Source: Bugula neritina (taxonomy: Eukaryota > Animalia > Bryozoa). From it: a DNA stretch of 64,000 nucleotides. The stretch's first letter is position 1; each line of letters begins with the position of its first letter. Made by a program: the position numbers and the translations under genes. Below are positions 28,116-43,100 of this stretch, in pieces. The stretch covers positions 21,063,700 to 21,127,699 of the forward strand of contig OZ037768.1 of the NCBI GenBank assembly GCA_964035545.1. The letters run 5' to 3'. The notes under the pieces are model-generated. The model saw only the letters and a list, made by a program, of their open reading frames with translations, had not been told where the DNA came from and did no database searches.

Positions 28116-31100
28116 ATGGCTGGGAGAAGAGTCAGCAGACCAGATGAAGGTGCCAAACACTATAGCAATTTATTTCAATAGAACCTGTAGAAATAAAGTT
28201 TTGAGCATGGTTTTAACTTATTTATAAAACTTTGAGATTAGAAAAAGTAATTTATTCTATATTAAAGCAATTTTATTGACCCAATTGTTAGAATTATATA
28301 TCTTTAAATTACTCTGCGTTTATTGACTACTTATAATAAACTATATGATAGATAATATTTGTTAGATGACAGTTCATCAGTATACACAGTTTATATACAG
28401 AGCAACATTGTAGACTTGTATCTAGAAATATTAGTTGTTAGATTTTGCTTTCAGCTTTATTGTTCATTGCTAGAGTTTGTAGCATTTCATCCTTTATATT
28501 TTGTAGGTTTGTACAGACTCTGGTTTGGTCATGATCACAGGAGTTTCCTTATGGAGGAATTGAGGATTATAATCAAAACAGCTAATACCCTTAAAAGATA
28601 CACCATTGAAAAGGTAAAGCAGATTCCTGAAGCCAGAACTGCAACACACCTCATCCTATTTGAACGAATTCCACCAGACATCCACCTTCTCTTTCCACTA
28701 GTCACTCATCTCACTATCAAAAGGTCTCAACTATTTTCCATACAAAAGTAAGACTTTAATCAGAAAATAACAAAATCCTAAAGTATTTTACTAATTGGTA
28801 GATGGCAACAAGGAAAAAATGAAAAAGCTTATAGCTGTTTTCTAAACTTAGATCCTGGCTTTTTCACATATATATATATATATATATATATATATATATA
28901 TATATATATATATATATATATATATATATATATATATATATATATATATATATATATATATATTTATATATATATATATATATATATATATATATATATA
29001 TATGTATATATATATATATATATATATATACATATATATATATATATATATATATACATATATATATATACATACGAGGGTGGTTCAAAAAGTAACGCCT
29101 GTTGTGTAAGATCAGAGAATTTTTATTTTCTGAATACTTAAACTATATATCAAAATGATCAGCAACAACTTAGGAACACACTTTATTTCTCAATATAGTC
29201 TCCTCCATTGTCCACAGCTGCTGTCCATCGTTTTATGAGACCATGTATTCCTGCCTCGTAAAAGGAGGATGGTTGTGAGCGCAGCCAAGACCGTACAGCC
29301 GTTTTAACTTCTTCATCAGTAGAGAATCGCTGACCTCTAAGTCCTTCCTTCATCGGACCAAACAAATGGAAGTCTGATGGAGCCAAGTCAGGGCTGTATG
29401 GTGATATGAGGCAATGTGGTCCACCCATGACGGGTGATTTCCTCTCTTGTTCTCAAACTTGTGTGGGGACGGGCATTGTCGTGCTGAAGGAGCACGTTAG
29501 CCACGTTGACATTTGGTCTGCAACGCTTAAGTCTGGTTTTCAACTTCTTTAGAGTCTCAATGTAGGCTTCAGAATTTATGGTAGTGCCTTTGGCCATAAA
29601 GTCAATCAGTATCACACCCTGATAATCCCAAAACACAGTAGCCATCACCTTGCCAGCGGATGGCTGAGATTTGAATTTCTTCTTTCTGGGTGAGTCTGCA
29701 TATCGCCATTCCATTGATCTTCTTTTGCTTTCTGGCTCATAATGATGAACTCAAGTTTCGTCACCAGTGATAATCCTTTGCAAAAATGTCTCATCTTCTG
29801 CATGCATGCTGAGAAGCTCACAACCATCCTCCTTTTACGAGGCAGGAATACATGCTCTCATAAAACGATGGACAGCAGCTGTGGACAATGGAGGAGACTA
29901 TATTGAGAAATAAAGTGTGTTCCTAAGTTGTTGCTGATCATTTTGATATATAGTTTAAGTATTCAGAAAATAAAAATTCTCTGATCTTACACAATAGGCG
30001 TTACTTTTTGAACCACCCTCGTATATATACATATATATATATATATATATATATATATATATATATATATATATATATATATATATATATATATATATAT
30101 ATATATATATATATATATATATATATATGTATAATCCGAGTAACTTAAATACATTGCACCTGACTTGACTCTGTATTTTGCTAAGCAATTTGTTAACTTT
30201 GTAGCCCTGTGTCTACTCTGCCTACTTTATGTTCATTATACATATAGTATGATAATAACAATTCTGCTTTTCACATCCGCTCCTTTGAGATGTAAACCCT
30301 CGCACTCACCATTTTATATGATGTTCAAATCTCAGATTATTAAGGGTAGGTAATTGTTTCCAAATGGACTAAACTTGTTCTAGTATATATTTATTGTTAC
30401 AGCATAAGCAAGTTGACTAATCTGAAGGCATTAGATATGAGTAGCAATGACTTTTCTGCTGGTCTACCTGACATCGTCAGTTCTCTACTCTCTCTGGAGG
30501 AGTTGGAGTTGAGATTGTGTAAACTACAAACTCTCCCCAAAAGGTAAAACACGCTTCATATCTCCTGTGTTATGCGCTAATATGCTATACTTGTAGTAAT
30601 CCTGGCTTAGCTTTGATATCTCATTTTCATATTCCATAAAAGTGGGTATCTGTTAGATAATATATAATTCTATGGGCTATCTAAATCAACATCATAACCT
30701 ATTGGGTCATTTCGTGTCAACTCAACCAATGGCCCACGCCTTTGCGTCTCAGATTTTGTTCATATTTACACCAAATGAACCTACACATGTCTTGAGTGCT
30801 ATTCTTAAATATTTCTGGCCTGACACAAAAACTTTTTGAGAAATGAATATTTCCACGAACAAAGGTTGGGAAAAATTTTGAGGAAAATTTGCGATTTTTA
30901 CTTTTAGACCAATTTGTAAACGTCCATATTTCCATTATTTTTCTAGACTGAGACTTAAAATTTGGTGTGTGATTTGATAACACCTATCAATTTGCACTAG
31001 TAGTAACACATACTGCAGAATACTTTGTGTGCATATATGCTAAGCCATTGAATATTGGCAATTCTTCATAAATTTTGAAAAATTTCGAATATTTGCCACA

Positions 31101-40100: not shown

Positions 40101-43100
40101 AGTTTTTATATGATACATCTTTAAAGCCATCATTAGGAATTAATAATTTGTTCAAGCTAAAATAAACTTATATTACCCAATAACATAATTGATTGTTACA
40201 GCACGTTGACTAATCTGAAGGCATTAGATATAAAATACAATGACTTTTCTGCTGGTCTACCTGACATCGTCAGTTCTCTACTCTCTCTGGAGAAGTTGGA
40301 GTTGAGAGAATGTAAACTGCAAAAACTCCCTAAGAGGTAAAACACACTTTATATCTGTTGTGCTATGCTGTACATGTATAATAATCCTGTGCATAATATT
40401 TTACTCTAAACACATTACCAAGCTTTTTTTAAGTTTTTTACTCATATTGTTGGCGTTCTAAAATTCATAGTTGTAAAACTAACAGATCGTTGAAGATTTT
40501 TATAAACTAAAACAAGCTTAGATTTATATGATAATTTGAGTTTAGTAATAGTTTTTTTTGTAAAATATCTTTAAAATTAATCAGTTTTTATAAGATACAT
40601 CTTTAAAGCCAACATTAGGAATTATAAGTAACTGGTTCAAACTAAAATATAGACTTGTACTGTTATCATTTATTGTTACAGCATCAGCAAATTGACTAAT
40701 CTGAAGGTATTAGATATAAGTAACAATGACTTTTCTGCTGGTCTACCTGACATCTTCAGTTCTCTACTTTCTCTGGAGAAGTTGGAGTTGACAGAGTGTA
40801 AACTGCAAAAACTTCCTAAGAGGTAAAACACACTTCATATCTCCTGTGCTATGCTGTACATGTAATAATCCTGTGCATATAGTATTTTGTCCTAAACACA
40901 TTACCAAGCTTTTTGCAAAGTTTTTTACTCACAGTGTTGGCATTCTACAATTCAAAGTTGTAAAACTAACAGAGTTGAAGAGTTTTATAAACTAAAACAA
41001 GCTTAGATTTATATGATAATTTGAGAAAGACATACAAATGATAAATATGAATTACGTTTTTTTACCTATAAGTAATAAAATACTCGTTTAAAGTTGATTG
41101 TATGCTGTTTATATATTGTTACAGCATCAGCGAGTTGACTAATCTGAAGGTATTAGATATGAGTTACAATGACTTTTCTGCTGGTCTACCTGACAACTTC
41201 AGCTCTCTACTCTCTCTGAAGGAGTTGAAGTTGAGAAACTGTCAACTACAAACCCTCCCAAAGAGGTAAAACACACTTTATACCTCCTATACTGCTATGT
41301 TATACATGTAATAATCTCTGATTAGTCTCACTGTCTAACTTGATATGTTATCTTAAAACCAGCTATATGCTTTGAAAGAAAGAACAAAAACATAATGTAT
41401 TCTACATATTATTTAGAAGTCTCATAACTTTTCTTATATAATTAAACTCCAGAAACTTGGCTTGAGTTGGAAAGTTATATGGCACAAGTTTCTACTACTA
41501 TATATACTACAAAATTATTATATTTAATTATATAGTATAAACTAAAATGTCATGAAGTTTTTCAAAAATAAAAAAACAAAATCATAGCTTGGAAAATGCA
41601 GACTTGTAAAATAGCATAAAACTATATATTCGATTAACAGTCAACAAACTTTGTAATAATTTATTATCATAATTGGGAACCAAATAATTCTGGTTTGAAA
41701 TGTAGAATTGTTTCACATAAAATGCATATTATATCTAACATAAATTTTATGTAAAAAATGACGCTCTCAGGTTATATTATAGGCTGCATATTTTCTTGCT
41801 TTCACACGTATCATTAGTTGGGAAGTTATCAGAAGAGAAAGTCTTATAAGCTGAACAAGGATTTGCTGTAAAATTTTCTGATTTTTGTGGCAGCGTATTG
41901 GTGTCATATGTTTAGGTAGAGCTGCTCTGTTAGTGTAGGGCCACATTAGACGTACTTTTGAGTGCGAATTTGAAATGAAATATGAAATATGAACAAGAGG
42001 AAGTACGCCGCTTATATAACGATAGCTAGCACACTTAACTTTTTGTTAGTGAAAGCAAAAATTTACCAGCTATAAATAATATTTGCATTAAGTTCTACTC
42101 CTACCTTGTTTTAAGGATATAAAAGTGTGGGACAAGTCAAATGTTTATTTTTAAATCTCACTAACTCACTATCACTATATCAATTTTTACAAAGTTGCCC
42201 ATTGTCCATAGTGGATACTTGTTATGTTTCACTGTAATCTAAAACTGCTTCCTACAAAACTTTTTTTAATGTCCAGATGCAGCATGCTTTCTGGTAAAAT
42301 TTAAGAAACACTTTGAGATGTACATGTTTTACAGTTTGGGCTCTCTGCACAGCTTGAGACATCTGGATTTTTCTTGGAATAAGTTCAAAGAGCTTCCTGA
42401 TTCAGTATACAATTTGGAAAGCTTGAAAACACTTGACCTTTCATACAACTCAAATCTTGAGCAGATGAATTCAAAATTTCTCCAGCTTACCAAATTGCAA
42501 CAAATTTCTTTAGATGGTGGTATTAAAATCAAGTTTCCACCACTTGGAGTTTGTACACAAGGAGTCGAAGCTATTAAACAGTTTTTTTTAGACATTAAAA
42601 TGGGAGCTGGAAATAGCCTTCCTCTTGTTACAATAGCAGTGATTGGCAACACGATGGCTGGAAAAACTAGTCTCATTAAAACTTTGCAAAATGTTGGCAG
42701 AACCAGAGTTTTAACAGATCGGAATCTTGAAAGTAAAATTGATGAAACTACAAAAGTTTTCAAAGTTGAAAAGTTGGAAATTGGAAAATGTTCACTGCAG
42801 CTCATTGATATGGGTGGAAATGAAATTTACCATACAACATACCAACTTGCCTTGCATCAAAATTGTGTCCCTCTGATTGTTGTTAACATGGCGCAATACA
42901 GAGATCATGTAAAAAAGTCATCTGAAAGAGAGGCTGTCCGTAGACTCGCGTTTGACTATATGTCTCACCTTTATCTAGCAAACCCTTCAATGGGCTCACC
43001 CAAACTGGTTCTCACACACAAAGACCTTTTTAGTGTCACTGAGTTTGCTGAATTGAAACATGGCTTCTTGAGCACTTCTAATCAGATATGCAAAGAAATA

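Follow-up and report, generated by a model that had tools for sequence, protein, structure and literature searches.

Large, fast-evolving receptor families are a hallmark of invertebrate innate immunity and allorecognition, with NLRs, TLRs and lectins making up most of the known ones. In vertebrates, NLR genes have equal-length, frame-symmetric exons for leucine-rich repeats (LRRs) (e.g., the 171-nt exons of NLRP genes), with exon skipping in NLRP3; their products are cytosolic, use a NACHT ATPase as the switch, and are linked to caspase activation through adaptors that recruit the caspase. MFHAS1 is present in vertebrates as one gene and has no caspase. In molluscs, there are ROCO proteins that carry TIR or Death domains (PMC9334734), and the LRR-ROCO genes of the brown algae Ectocarpus and Saccharina shuffle their LRR exons and have been proposed to encode diversified receptors (PMC3341825, PMC11378527).

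We consider it probable that six LRR cassettes in a 64,000-nt stretch of Bugula neritina DNA (the window) are exons 2 to 7 of a single LRR-Roc-COR-caspase gene and that their array is a germline diversification device. This gene resembles the algal LRR-ROCO genes in its LRR-Roc-COR order, its tandem, equal-length, symmetric phase-2 LRR exons, the clustering of the genes, the variable exon number and the variation at exposed LRR positions. The algal unit, however, is 72 nt and encodes one LRR, whereas the bryozoan unit is 141 or 144 nt and encodes two; the bryozoan gene belongs to an animal and has a caspase fused at its C terminus; and in the algae alternative splicing has been reported. The two exon structures bear no sign of common descent, and the brown algae appear to have reached the exon-cassette logic of the sensor arm independently. 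With MFHAS1/MASL1, LRRK1/2, DAPK1 and other metazoan ROCO genes the bryozoan gene has the LRR-Roc-COR core in common, and its fold matches LRRK1/2 and bacterial Roco. It differs from MFHAS1 in having about 100 paralogs, LRR arms built from cassette exons and a fused caspase, and from vertebrate NLRs in its Roc-COR switch, its fused caspase, its LRR type and its exon size. Compared with the receptor families described above, the bryozoan family thus has another switch and a predicted executioner caspase in the same polypeptide.

Gene model and domain architecture

The gene model comprises 14 exons on the forward strand (28551-47961; Table 1) and 1397 codons; its total of 4194 nt is a multiple of 3, and AG/GT is present at all borders. 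An N-terminal exon is followed by the LRR cassettes, Roc, COR, a linker and the caspase, and about 15 LRRs are encoded, 12 of which come from the six two-LRR cassette exons. The initial annotation had described these six as interchangeable LRR cassettes, and this was confirmed: five exons of 141 nt and one of 135 nt lie on the forward strand, with AG/GT borders and a phase of 2 at either end. The sequence before each exon is ..ACAG and that after it GTAAAAC; every exon opens on the last base of one codon and breaks off two bases into another, which makes it symmetric. As the upstream donor (GT after 28747) and the downstream acceptor (AG before 42335) are also in phase 2, any subset of cassettes stays in frame. 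The similarity among the copies is beyond chance (nhmmer E values of 1e-46 to 1e-49; pairwise exon identity of 86-98%). The remaining details of that annotation also proved accurate: LTNLK and NDFSAGLPD are invariant in all six cassettes, synonymous sites included, the quoted beta-strand peptides are all correct, with the variation in the xxLxLxx stretches, and the sole indel, the loss of 6 nt from the 5' end of cassette 4, is in frame. Three points had escaped that annotation: the DNA comes from an animal (a bugulid bryozoan), a caspase terminates the gene, and about a hundred genes of this kind exist.

Table 1. Exons of the gene model and duplicated or inserted segments of its introns (positions in the window).
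Feature	Position	Strand	Description
Putative first coding exon	28551..28747	+	ATG to GT donor, phase 2; LRR-like unit at 3' end, in the same register as the cassettes
Cassette c1	30403-30543	+	141 nt, 2 LRRs, phase 2/2; 98% identical to c2
Insertion in c1-c2 intron	30698..34424		Palindromic element, arms 30728-32042 and 33079-34393, 98% complementary
Part of c1-c2 intron copied in c2-c3 intron (37956-38797)	34425..35267	+	Repeat families D4, D6 and D13, 94-99%
Intron segment upstream of c2	37035..37558	+	96-99% identical to 38799-39318 upstream of c3 (D5, D9-D15); other half of the 1.76-kb duplicated unit
Cassette c2	37661-37801	+	141 nt
Cassette c3	39415-39555	+	141 nt
Cassette c4	40202-40336	+	135 nt; two codons shorter at 5' end
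Cassette c5	40682-40822	+	141 nt
Cassette c6	41125-41265	+	141 nt; colinear with the final cassette in two close relatives
Large exon	42335..44406	+	Three further LRRs, Roc GTPase and COR
Linker exons (two)	45064-45147, 45465-45655	+	tblastn with Bugula neritina protein P0019; splice sites and phases
Caspase-domain exons (three)	46129-46299, 46663-46885, 47732-47961	+	Pfam PF00656 on exon translations
Exon between caspase exons	47213-47398	+	AG/GT borders; part of the 14-exon model

Domains were assigned by searching the exons individually rather than as the joined spliced protein. Neither the first exon nor the exon lying between the caspase exons gave a Pfam match; a homologue of the former was found by tblastn in a distant C1 paralog, where it precedes the cassettes. 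An Rfam search of the whole window gave no match. For the large exon, Pfam matched LRRs and, with PF08477, the Roc domain (29.1 bits against a cut-off of 27), the GTPase motifs G1, G3 (DMGG) and G4 (THKD) are all present in the translation, and a PDB sequence search matched the Roc region to LRRK2 residues 1249-1423 and to the Roc domain of C. tepidum Roco. Pfam matches to COR-A and COR-B were weak (17 bits). An AlphaFold model of this exon (pLDDT 85.7) was matched by Foldseek to LRRK1, to the CtRoco LRR-Roc-COR structure and to the COR domain alone; it aligns over about 670 columns with CtRoco (6hlu) and also with the COR-only structure 3dpt (TM of 0.63 by target). On the predicted structure, the gene is of the ROCO type, with a Roc GTPase and a COR directly C-terminal to Roc. 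The peptidase C14 profile (PF00656) matched three exons in order (E = 4.6e-10, 5.2e-11 and 0.017), which cover profile positions 1-49, 49-129 and 170-213; the second of these exons carries SHG and VCSGG motifs, and the third terminates at a stop codon. The C-terminal domain is, by its motifs, a caspase fold with putative catalytic His and Cys residues, and its active-site pentapeptide reads EVCSG as against the canonical QACxG.

The encoded proteins may be one-piece cytosolic sensors, in which binding of a ligand to the LRRs would act on Roc-COR as a switch or dimeriser and so activate the fused caspase. Such sensors could serve in immunity, or in self/non-self cell death in a colonial animal. 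If this function were confirmed, the family would add a new class to the pattern or non-self receptors of animals, would serve as a minimal model of adaptor-free ligand-to-caspase signalling and would be a clear example of gene architectures that have converged on the generation of binding diversity. Its members are also candidate genes for the fusion and rejection behaviour of bryozoan colonies, which is so far unexplained.

Duplication of the cassettes and their junctions in RNA

With a later insertion removed, c1 and its intron are 97-99% identical to c2 and its intron across about 1.7 kb; these cassettes arose when a 1.76-kb unit of exon plus intron was recently duplicated once in tandem. 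Apart from the insertion, the stretch that it splits matches the c2-c3 intron at 97-99% identity, and the copied segment downstream of the insertion holds a LINE-like reverse-transcriptase fragment on the reverse strand, as seen in the open reading frames. In many nearest-neighbour cassette pairs, the flanks on one side are near-identical and those on the other unrelated, which points to recombination breakpoints at or near the exons. Such mosaic introns fit unequal crossing-over or conversion with breakpoints at exons. The tandem, symmetric, same-phase LRR exons of near-equal length also vary in number among close relatives, there being 6 in this gene and 6 in the next, 5 or more in a third, as many as 26 in a paralog on chromosome 6 and 4 at the NCBI Bugula neritina locus. 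Diversification by exon duplication, as proposed initially, is therefore evident in the germline from the 1.76-kb unit and the variable cassette number; the conversion proposed alongside it is compatible with the mosaic introns, as is unequal crossing-over.

Our results suggest how such an array may work. The cassettes and both neighbouring exons have phase 2 and the LRR register in common, so that unequal crossing-over can add, delete or recombine two-LRR units while the frame and the solenoid stay intact. After duplication, the hydrophobic scaffold is kept constant while residues in or beside the beta-strand (xxLxLxx, on the predicted concave face) change fast. Over about 100 genes and hundreds of cassettes, this process would yield a large inherited repertoire of differing LRR surfaces.

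The same exons could instead be used through combinatorial or stochastic alternative splicing, with cells skipping differing subsets of cassettes and one gene giving rise to many receptor isoforms. The near-identical splice sites and the uniform phase 2, which keeps any subset in frame, are as this reading would have them; there is a precedent in brown-algal ROCO genes with 72-bp phase-2 LRR exons and up to nine annotated splice variants (PMC11378527), and in one contig from RNA run X1 a c1/c2-like end adjoins the start of c6. However, the end at this joint, CTCCCCAAGAG, is typical of the cassettes of the chromosome 6 paralog and not of c1-c5, so that cross-mapping of a short contig is a simpler explanation than skipping, and this single apparent skipping joint is probably of that origin. 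The other RNA joints are consecutive, linking a c2-like end to a c3-like start, and a c1-like end to c2, at the exact borders. RNA-library contigs show cassette-to-cassette splicing exactly at the predicted borders, coverage in two RNA runs is on exons only, and in contigs of run X9 cassette starts directly follow a paralogous end, ..ATACAAAA; these are short Logan contigs, 3-7% divergent from the window and without the power to phase cassettes, and they may come from alleles or paralogs of the window gene. The pattern of a spliced cassette-cassette junction had no match in JGI metagenome contigs. Hence, the combinatorial splicing raised as a possibility in the initial annotation is so far unsupported, the joints in the RNA-derived contigs being ordinary ones between cassettes and none of them securely a skip; all cassettes are probably included in the mRNA by default. 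We regard skipping as an unlikely basis for the array. A somatic 'sense-and-kill' repertoire for defence or colony allorecognition, in which stochastic or regulated skipping would give cells or zooids differing cassette subsets across about 100 genes, is a little less likely still.

Variation on the predicted binding face

Among the six cassettes, 16 of 46 full codons vary in amino acid, and the varying codons comprise 8 of the 10 predicted to be exposed (xxLxLxx) as against 8 of the 36 others (Fisher p=0.0015). The claim that variation is focused on the predicted binding face held in this comparison. As a check on LRR geometry, a natural Watersipora homolog was modelled with AlphaFold, and the beta-strands fell on x3-L4-x5 of every repeat. 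For selection, Nei-Gojobori counts were made on independent cassette pairs. Over 16 such pairs, pN at exposed codons was 0.127 and pooled pS was 0.068 (a ratio of 1.9, p=0.003), with hot codons showing 9-10 nonsynonymous versus 0-1.5 synonymous changes; measured against their own pS, the exposed codons gave a pN/pS of 1.14, which was not significant. Divergence at synonymous sites in the exons was 0.068 as against 0.161 for pooled flanking introns. As exonic synonymous sites are more conserved than the introns, the ratio of 1.9 may be inflated by constrained or homogenised sites. In colinear comparisons, with small counts, exposed pN was 0.12-0.20 versus an intron divergence of 0.08-0.09. The expectation of a dN/dS above 1 at exposed sites was thus upheld with pooled exonic synonymous sites as the reference but not with the exposed codons' own; the excess is modest and hinges on the neutral rate chosen, and positive selection has moderate support.

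It is also conceivable that tandem duplication in a transposon-laden, repeat-rich region produced the array incidentally, a case of neutral birth-and-death with surface residues unconstrained and some cassettes, or the gene itself, decaying. An overall cassette omega of about 1 would be in keeping with such a history, as would the many transposon insertions in the introns, the stop codon in a neighbouring cassette just beyond the window end and the missing GT donors of three cassettes in the chromosome 6 array. In addition, pN/pS at non-exposed codons is about 0.9 across the subfamily, and relaxed constraint therefore accounts for part of the pattern. However, in this gene the frames of all six cassettes are open, their borders are AG/GT and their scaffold motifs do not vary; the 1397-codon model has no interruption; and the omega of Roc and COR, 0.23-0.43 in colinear comparisons, indicates purifying selection. 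Moreover, the placement of the substitutions on the predicted concave face is not random, and divergence at that face is higher than in the introns. Neutral birth-and-death is therefore an improbable account of the array, and we prefer germline diversification. Somatic assembly or conversion of cassettes at the DNA level, in the manner of lamprey VLRs, is extremely improbable: the likeness, that of many LRR cassettes near an LRR gene, is superficial, and where VLR-like receptors have an incomplete germline gene into which flanking cassettes without splice sites are copied, the cassettes here lie within a complete germline gene, in one orientation, with canonical AG/GT splice sites at which they are joined in RNA-derived contigs.

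The family in the genome and its public relatives

Intact Roc-COR exons number at least 74 in the same genome, and candidate cassettes 803; the family has about 100 genes with hundreds of cassettes. Paralogs on two other chromosomes, only 47-50% identical, have 141- or 144-nt phase-2 cassettes and caspase exons, and the build of cassettes, Roc-COR and caspase is common to the whole family. No description of a ROCO-caspase or LRR-cassette family from bryozoans was found in the literature library searched. Among public sequences, those nearest to this gene are Bugula neritina proteins (87-90%) and Watersipora proteins termed 'MFHAS1 homolog'; the NCBI Bugula neritina protein had its best match, at 90% identity, in a paralog. 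The name stems only from the automatic naming of the Watersipora proteins by NCBI; a gene with a caspase after the COR and at least 74 paralogs does not fit MFHAS1 (MASL1) orthologs, which are LRR-Roc-COR proteins that have no other catalytic domain. Four of the Watersipora proteins (P0031, P0032, P0034 and P0037) were considered as isoforms differing in cassette number and proved to be paralogs, with 71-78% identity. Relatives outside the bryozoans have an identity of at most 22%, and the one from Patella carries a Death domain.

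Cassette exons and gene model

Our results show that this LRR-Roc-COR-caspase gene of Bugula neritina is diversified in the germline: its two-LRR cassette exons (c1-c6) have been duplicated and recombined, and their variation centres on the predicted binding face. A repeat search of the window, which lies at 21063700-21127699 on chromosome 4, recovered a ~300-nt unit in six copies (Table), and alignment of these copies delimited a conserved core in each, with TTGTTACAG on the 5' side and GTAAAACAC on the 3' side. In every cassette the first base completes a codon split by the preceding intron and the last two bases open the next split codon, which makes all six phase 2 at either end. 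The initial annotation had described six symmetric phase-2 LRR exons of 141 or 135 nt, and alignment, borders and phases agree with it in every detail; the peptides it quoted are the translations obtained here. The scaffolds LTNLK and NDFSAGLPD, said to be invariant, are identical among the six cassettes down to synonymous positions, and the only indel is in frame as claimed, namely the loss of two codons from the 5' end of c4.

Downstream of the cassettes, a phase-2 acceptor opens a large exon in which Pfam matched LRRs and a Roc GTPase and, weakly, COR-A and COR-B; its translation carries P-loop, DxxG and NKxD-type motifs. A PDB sequence search matched this exon to the LRR-Roc region of LRRK2 and to bacterial Roco Roc domains. 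Its AlphaFold model (pLDDT 85.7, from an alignment of 44 homologs) matched over the whole length, in Foldseek, LRRK1, the C. tepidum LRR-Roc-COR crystal structure and an isolated COR domain. Further downstream exons were located from the B. neritina protein P0019, a tblastn query, and three of them match the caspase family PF00656, in order. The 14-exon model has AG/GT at all borders, a total of 4194 nt and a stop codon at its end; it is a set of coordinates, not a joined sequence, and all searches were run exon by exon.

Table. Features of the locus and its surroundings (window positions unless a chromosome is named)
Feature	Position	Length	Start of ~300-nt unit	Basis or detail
Tandem repeats, minisatellite-like	19819-20469; 21626-21934
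ATG-initiated exon	28551-28747			upstream of cassettes; phase-2 GT donor, cassettes' LRR register
Mariner-type remnants	29183-29913			Pfam Transposase_1
c1 core	30403-30543	141 nt	30398	aligned repeat copies
Palindromic insertion	30698-34424	3.7 kb		arms 30728-32042 and 33079-34393
c2 core	37661-37801	141 nt	37656	aligned repeat copies
c3 core	39415-39555	141 nt	39410	aligned repeat copies
c4 core	40202-40336	135 nt	40191	aligned repeat copies
c5 core	40682-40822	141 nt	40677	aligned repeat copies
c6 core	41125-41265	141 nt	41120	aligned repeat copies
Large exon	42335-44406	2072 nt		acceptor 42333-42334
LTR retrotransposon	53930-61824			LTRs 53930-54229 and 61525-61824
Lone cassette and cassette fragment	chromosome 4, 21127829-21128762			just past window end
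Sister gene	chromosome 6, 12741777-12767342

Growth of the array

Once the palindromic insertion and an AT-rich microsatellite block were removed, c1 with its downstream intron was 97-99% identical to c2 with its own, and the segment immediately upstream of c2 was 96-99% identical to that immediately upstream of c3. This is the pattern left by a single recent tandem duplication of a cassette-plus-intron unit of 1.76 kb. The insertion, in the c1-c2 intron, has arms of 1315 nt that are 98% complementary and separated by 1036 nt; the c2-c3 intron, identical apart from this, lacks it, so it is younger than the duplication.

Among 33 distinct intact cassettes of the subfamily (three chromosome 4 genes and one chromosome 6 gene), nearest-neighbour pairs often share one near-identical flank while the other is unrelated, which places recombination breakpoints at or adjoining the exons. 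The closest partner lies within the same gene for some cassettes (c1-c2, c4-c5) and in a sister gene for others. Cassette number also differs: six in this gene and in the next, at least five in the third, up to 26 in the chromosome 6 gene and four in the NCBI B. neritina locus. The exon duplication proposed in the initial annotation is thus upheld by the tandem unit and by these differing counts.

In the chromosome 6 array, cassettes are ~420 bp apart, three lack a GT donor, and a ~5-kb block occurs twice (local starts 16205 and 21167) with its eight intact cassettes identical, which points to a very recent duplication or else to an artefact of assembly. The lone intact cassette on chromosome 4 is followed after 800 nt by a cassette fragment with a stop codon, with no Roc-COR exon nearby; the lone cassette may be an orphan remnant or a distant first cassette of the next gene.

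Variation at the predicted binding face

Codons x2, x3, x5, x7 and x8 of both LxxLxLxxN/C segments, ten in all, were classed as exposed. Of these, eight differ among the six cassettes, compared with 8 of the 36 others (Fisher p=0.0015), in keeping with the suggested focus on the ligand-binding face, and mean pN/pS is 0.238/0.123 at exposed codons vs 0.056/0.155 elsewhere. In an AlphaFold-modelled Watersipora homolog (pLDDT 76), every repeat has a beta-strand on x3-L4-x5, which places the variable residues on and beside the concave sheet.

Within the subfamily, 16 cassette pairs that are phylogenetically independent give an exposed pN (0.127) that exceeds pooled pS (0.068) at a ratio of 1.9 (p=0.003), but the ratio to the pS of the exposed codons themselves (0.112) is 1.14 and not significant. 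It is possible that synonymous sites are constrained or homogenised. In the same pairs, alignment positions 2, 13, 15, 34, 36 and 41 each show 7-10 nonsynonymous vs 0-1.5 synonymous changes, and a single-omega codon model gave 1.3 overall for cassettes. A cleaner neutral yardstick is the colinear last cassette, ~1-kb intron and large exon of this gene, its neighbour and the NCBI locus; there, intron divergence is 0.082-0.092, exposed-codon pN 0.12-0.20, and omega of Roc and COR 0.23-0.43. These results, from small counts, support binding-face change that is faster than neutral, or at least at the neutral rate, over a conserved scaffold; selection above neutrality on the cassettes is moderately supported. 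The three LRRs inside the large exon are also fast (pN/pS 0.7-1.4 vs relatives).

Splicing, relatives and known ROCO systems

RNA evidence came from four runs as short Logan contigs, which diverge from the window by 3-7% where they match. Two runs covered the cassette exons and the large exon and no introns. Three runs, of which one is an oligo-dT RNA library, yielded contigs in which a c2-like end meets a c3-like start at precisely the borders predicted; in a further contig a c1-like end is followed by the start of c2. The predicted splice sites are thus in use within the family. Loose contig ends show a paralogous first exon spliced straight to cassette starts. One contig has an apparent skipping joint of a c1/c2-like end to the c6 start; its ending, CTCCCCAAGAG, is usual in cassettes of the chromosome 6 paralog and not in c1-c5, and we therefore read it as cross-mapping. 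The spliced-junction pattern had no match in JGI contigs. Combinatorial cassette splicing is unproven, and the initial annotation's interpretation as a whole is supported in part.

The best public relatives include JGI metagenome proteins (up to 82%) and a hypothetical protein from B. neritina, which is 87% identical to this gene and 90% to a neighbouring paralog. Watersipora subatra relatives (36%) are named 'MFHAS1 homolog' by NCBI; some have a caspase domain. Within the genome, at least 74 of 113 candidates are intact Roc-COR exon paralogs, and a single cassette peptide gave 803 first-look candidates, with all 150 scored being significant. Paralogs on chromosomes 1 and 8 (47-50% identical) are built alike, from phase-2 two-LRR exons of 144 nt or 141 nt in arrays, a single large Roc-COR exon and caspase exons, and Watersipora paralogs contain from one to at least five 47-residue cassette units. 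Judged from these sequences, the cassette-LRR/Roc-COR/caspase architecture is common to the whole family and older than the Bugula-Watersipora split.

In brown algae, the LRR arm of ROCO genes consists of 72-bp phase-2 exons of one LRR each, with exon shuffling, diversifying selection and alternative splicing (PMC3341825, PMC11378527). The bryozoan family shares this cassette logic, but its unit is two LRRs, its host is an animal and a fused caspase is added. Molluscan ROCO proteins with TIR or Death domains are on record (PMC9334734); a literature search found no paper on the bryozoan ROCO-caspase family or its cassette exons. The interest of the locus lies mainly in its membership of a large LRR-Roc-COR-caspase receptor family that has apparently not been described.

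The window also contains several repeats. The mariner-type transposase remnants, in the intron separating c1 from the first exon, have stops that break the frame and are flanked by long (TA/TATG)n microsatellites. The minisatellite-like repeats read as long repetitive ORFs and are probably non-coding. In the LTR retrotransposon (GC ~58% vs 32% for the host), the gag (CCHC), protease/RT/RNase H and integrase frames are long and open, and there is an extra 523-codon ORF; over the 300 nt compared, its LTRs share 98% identity, and it looks like a recent insertion.
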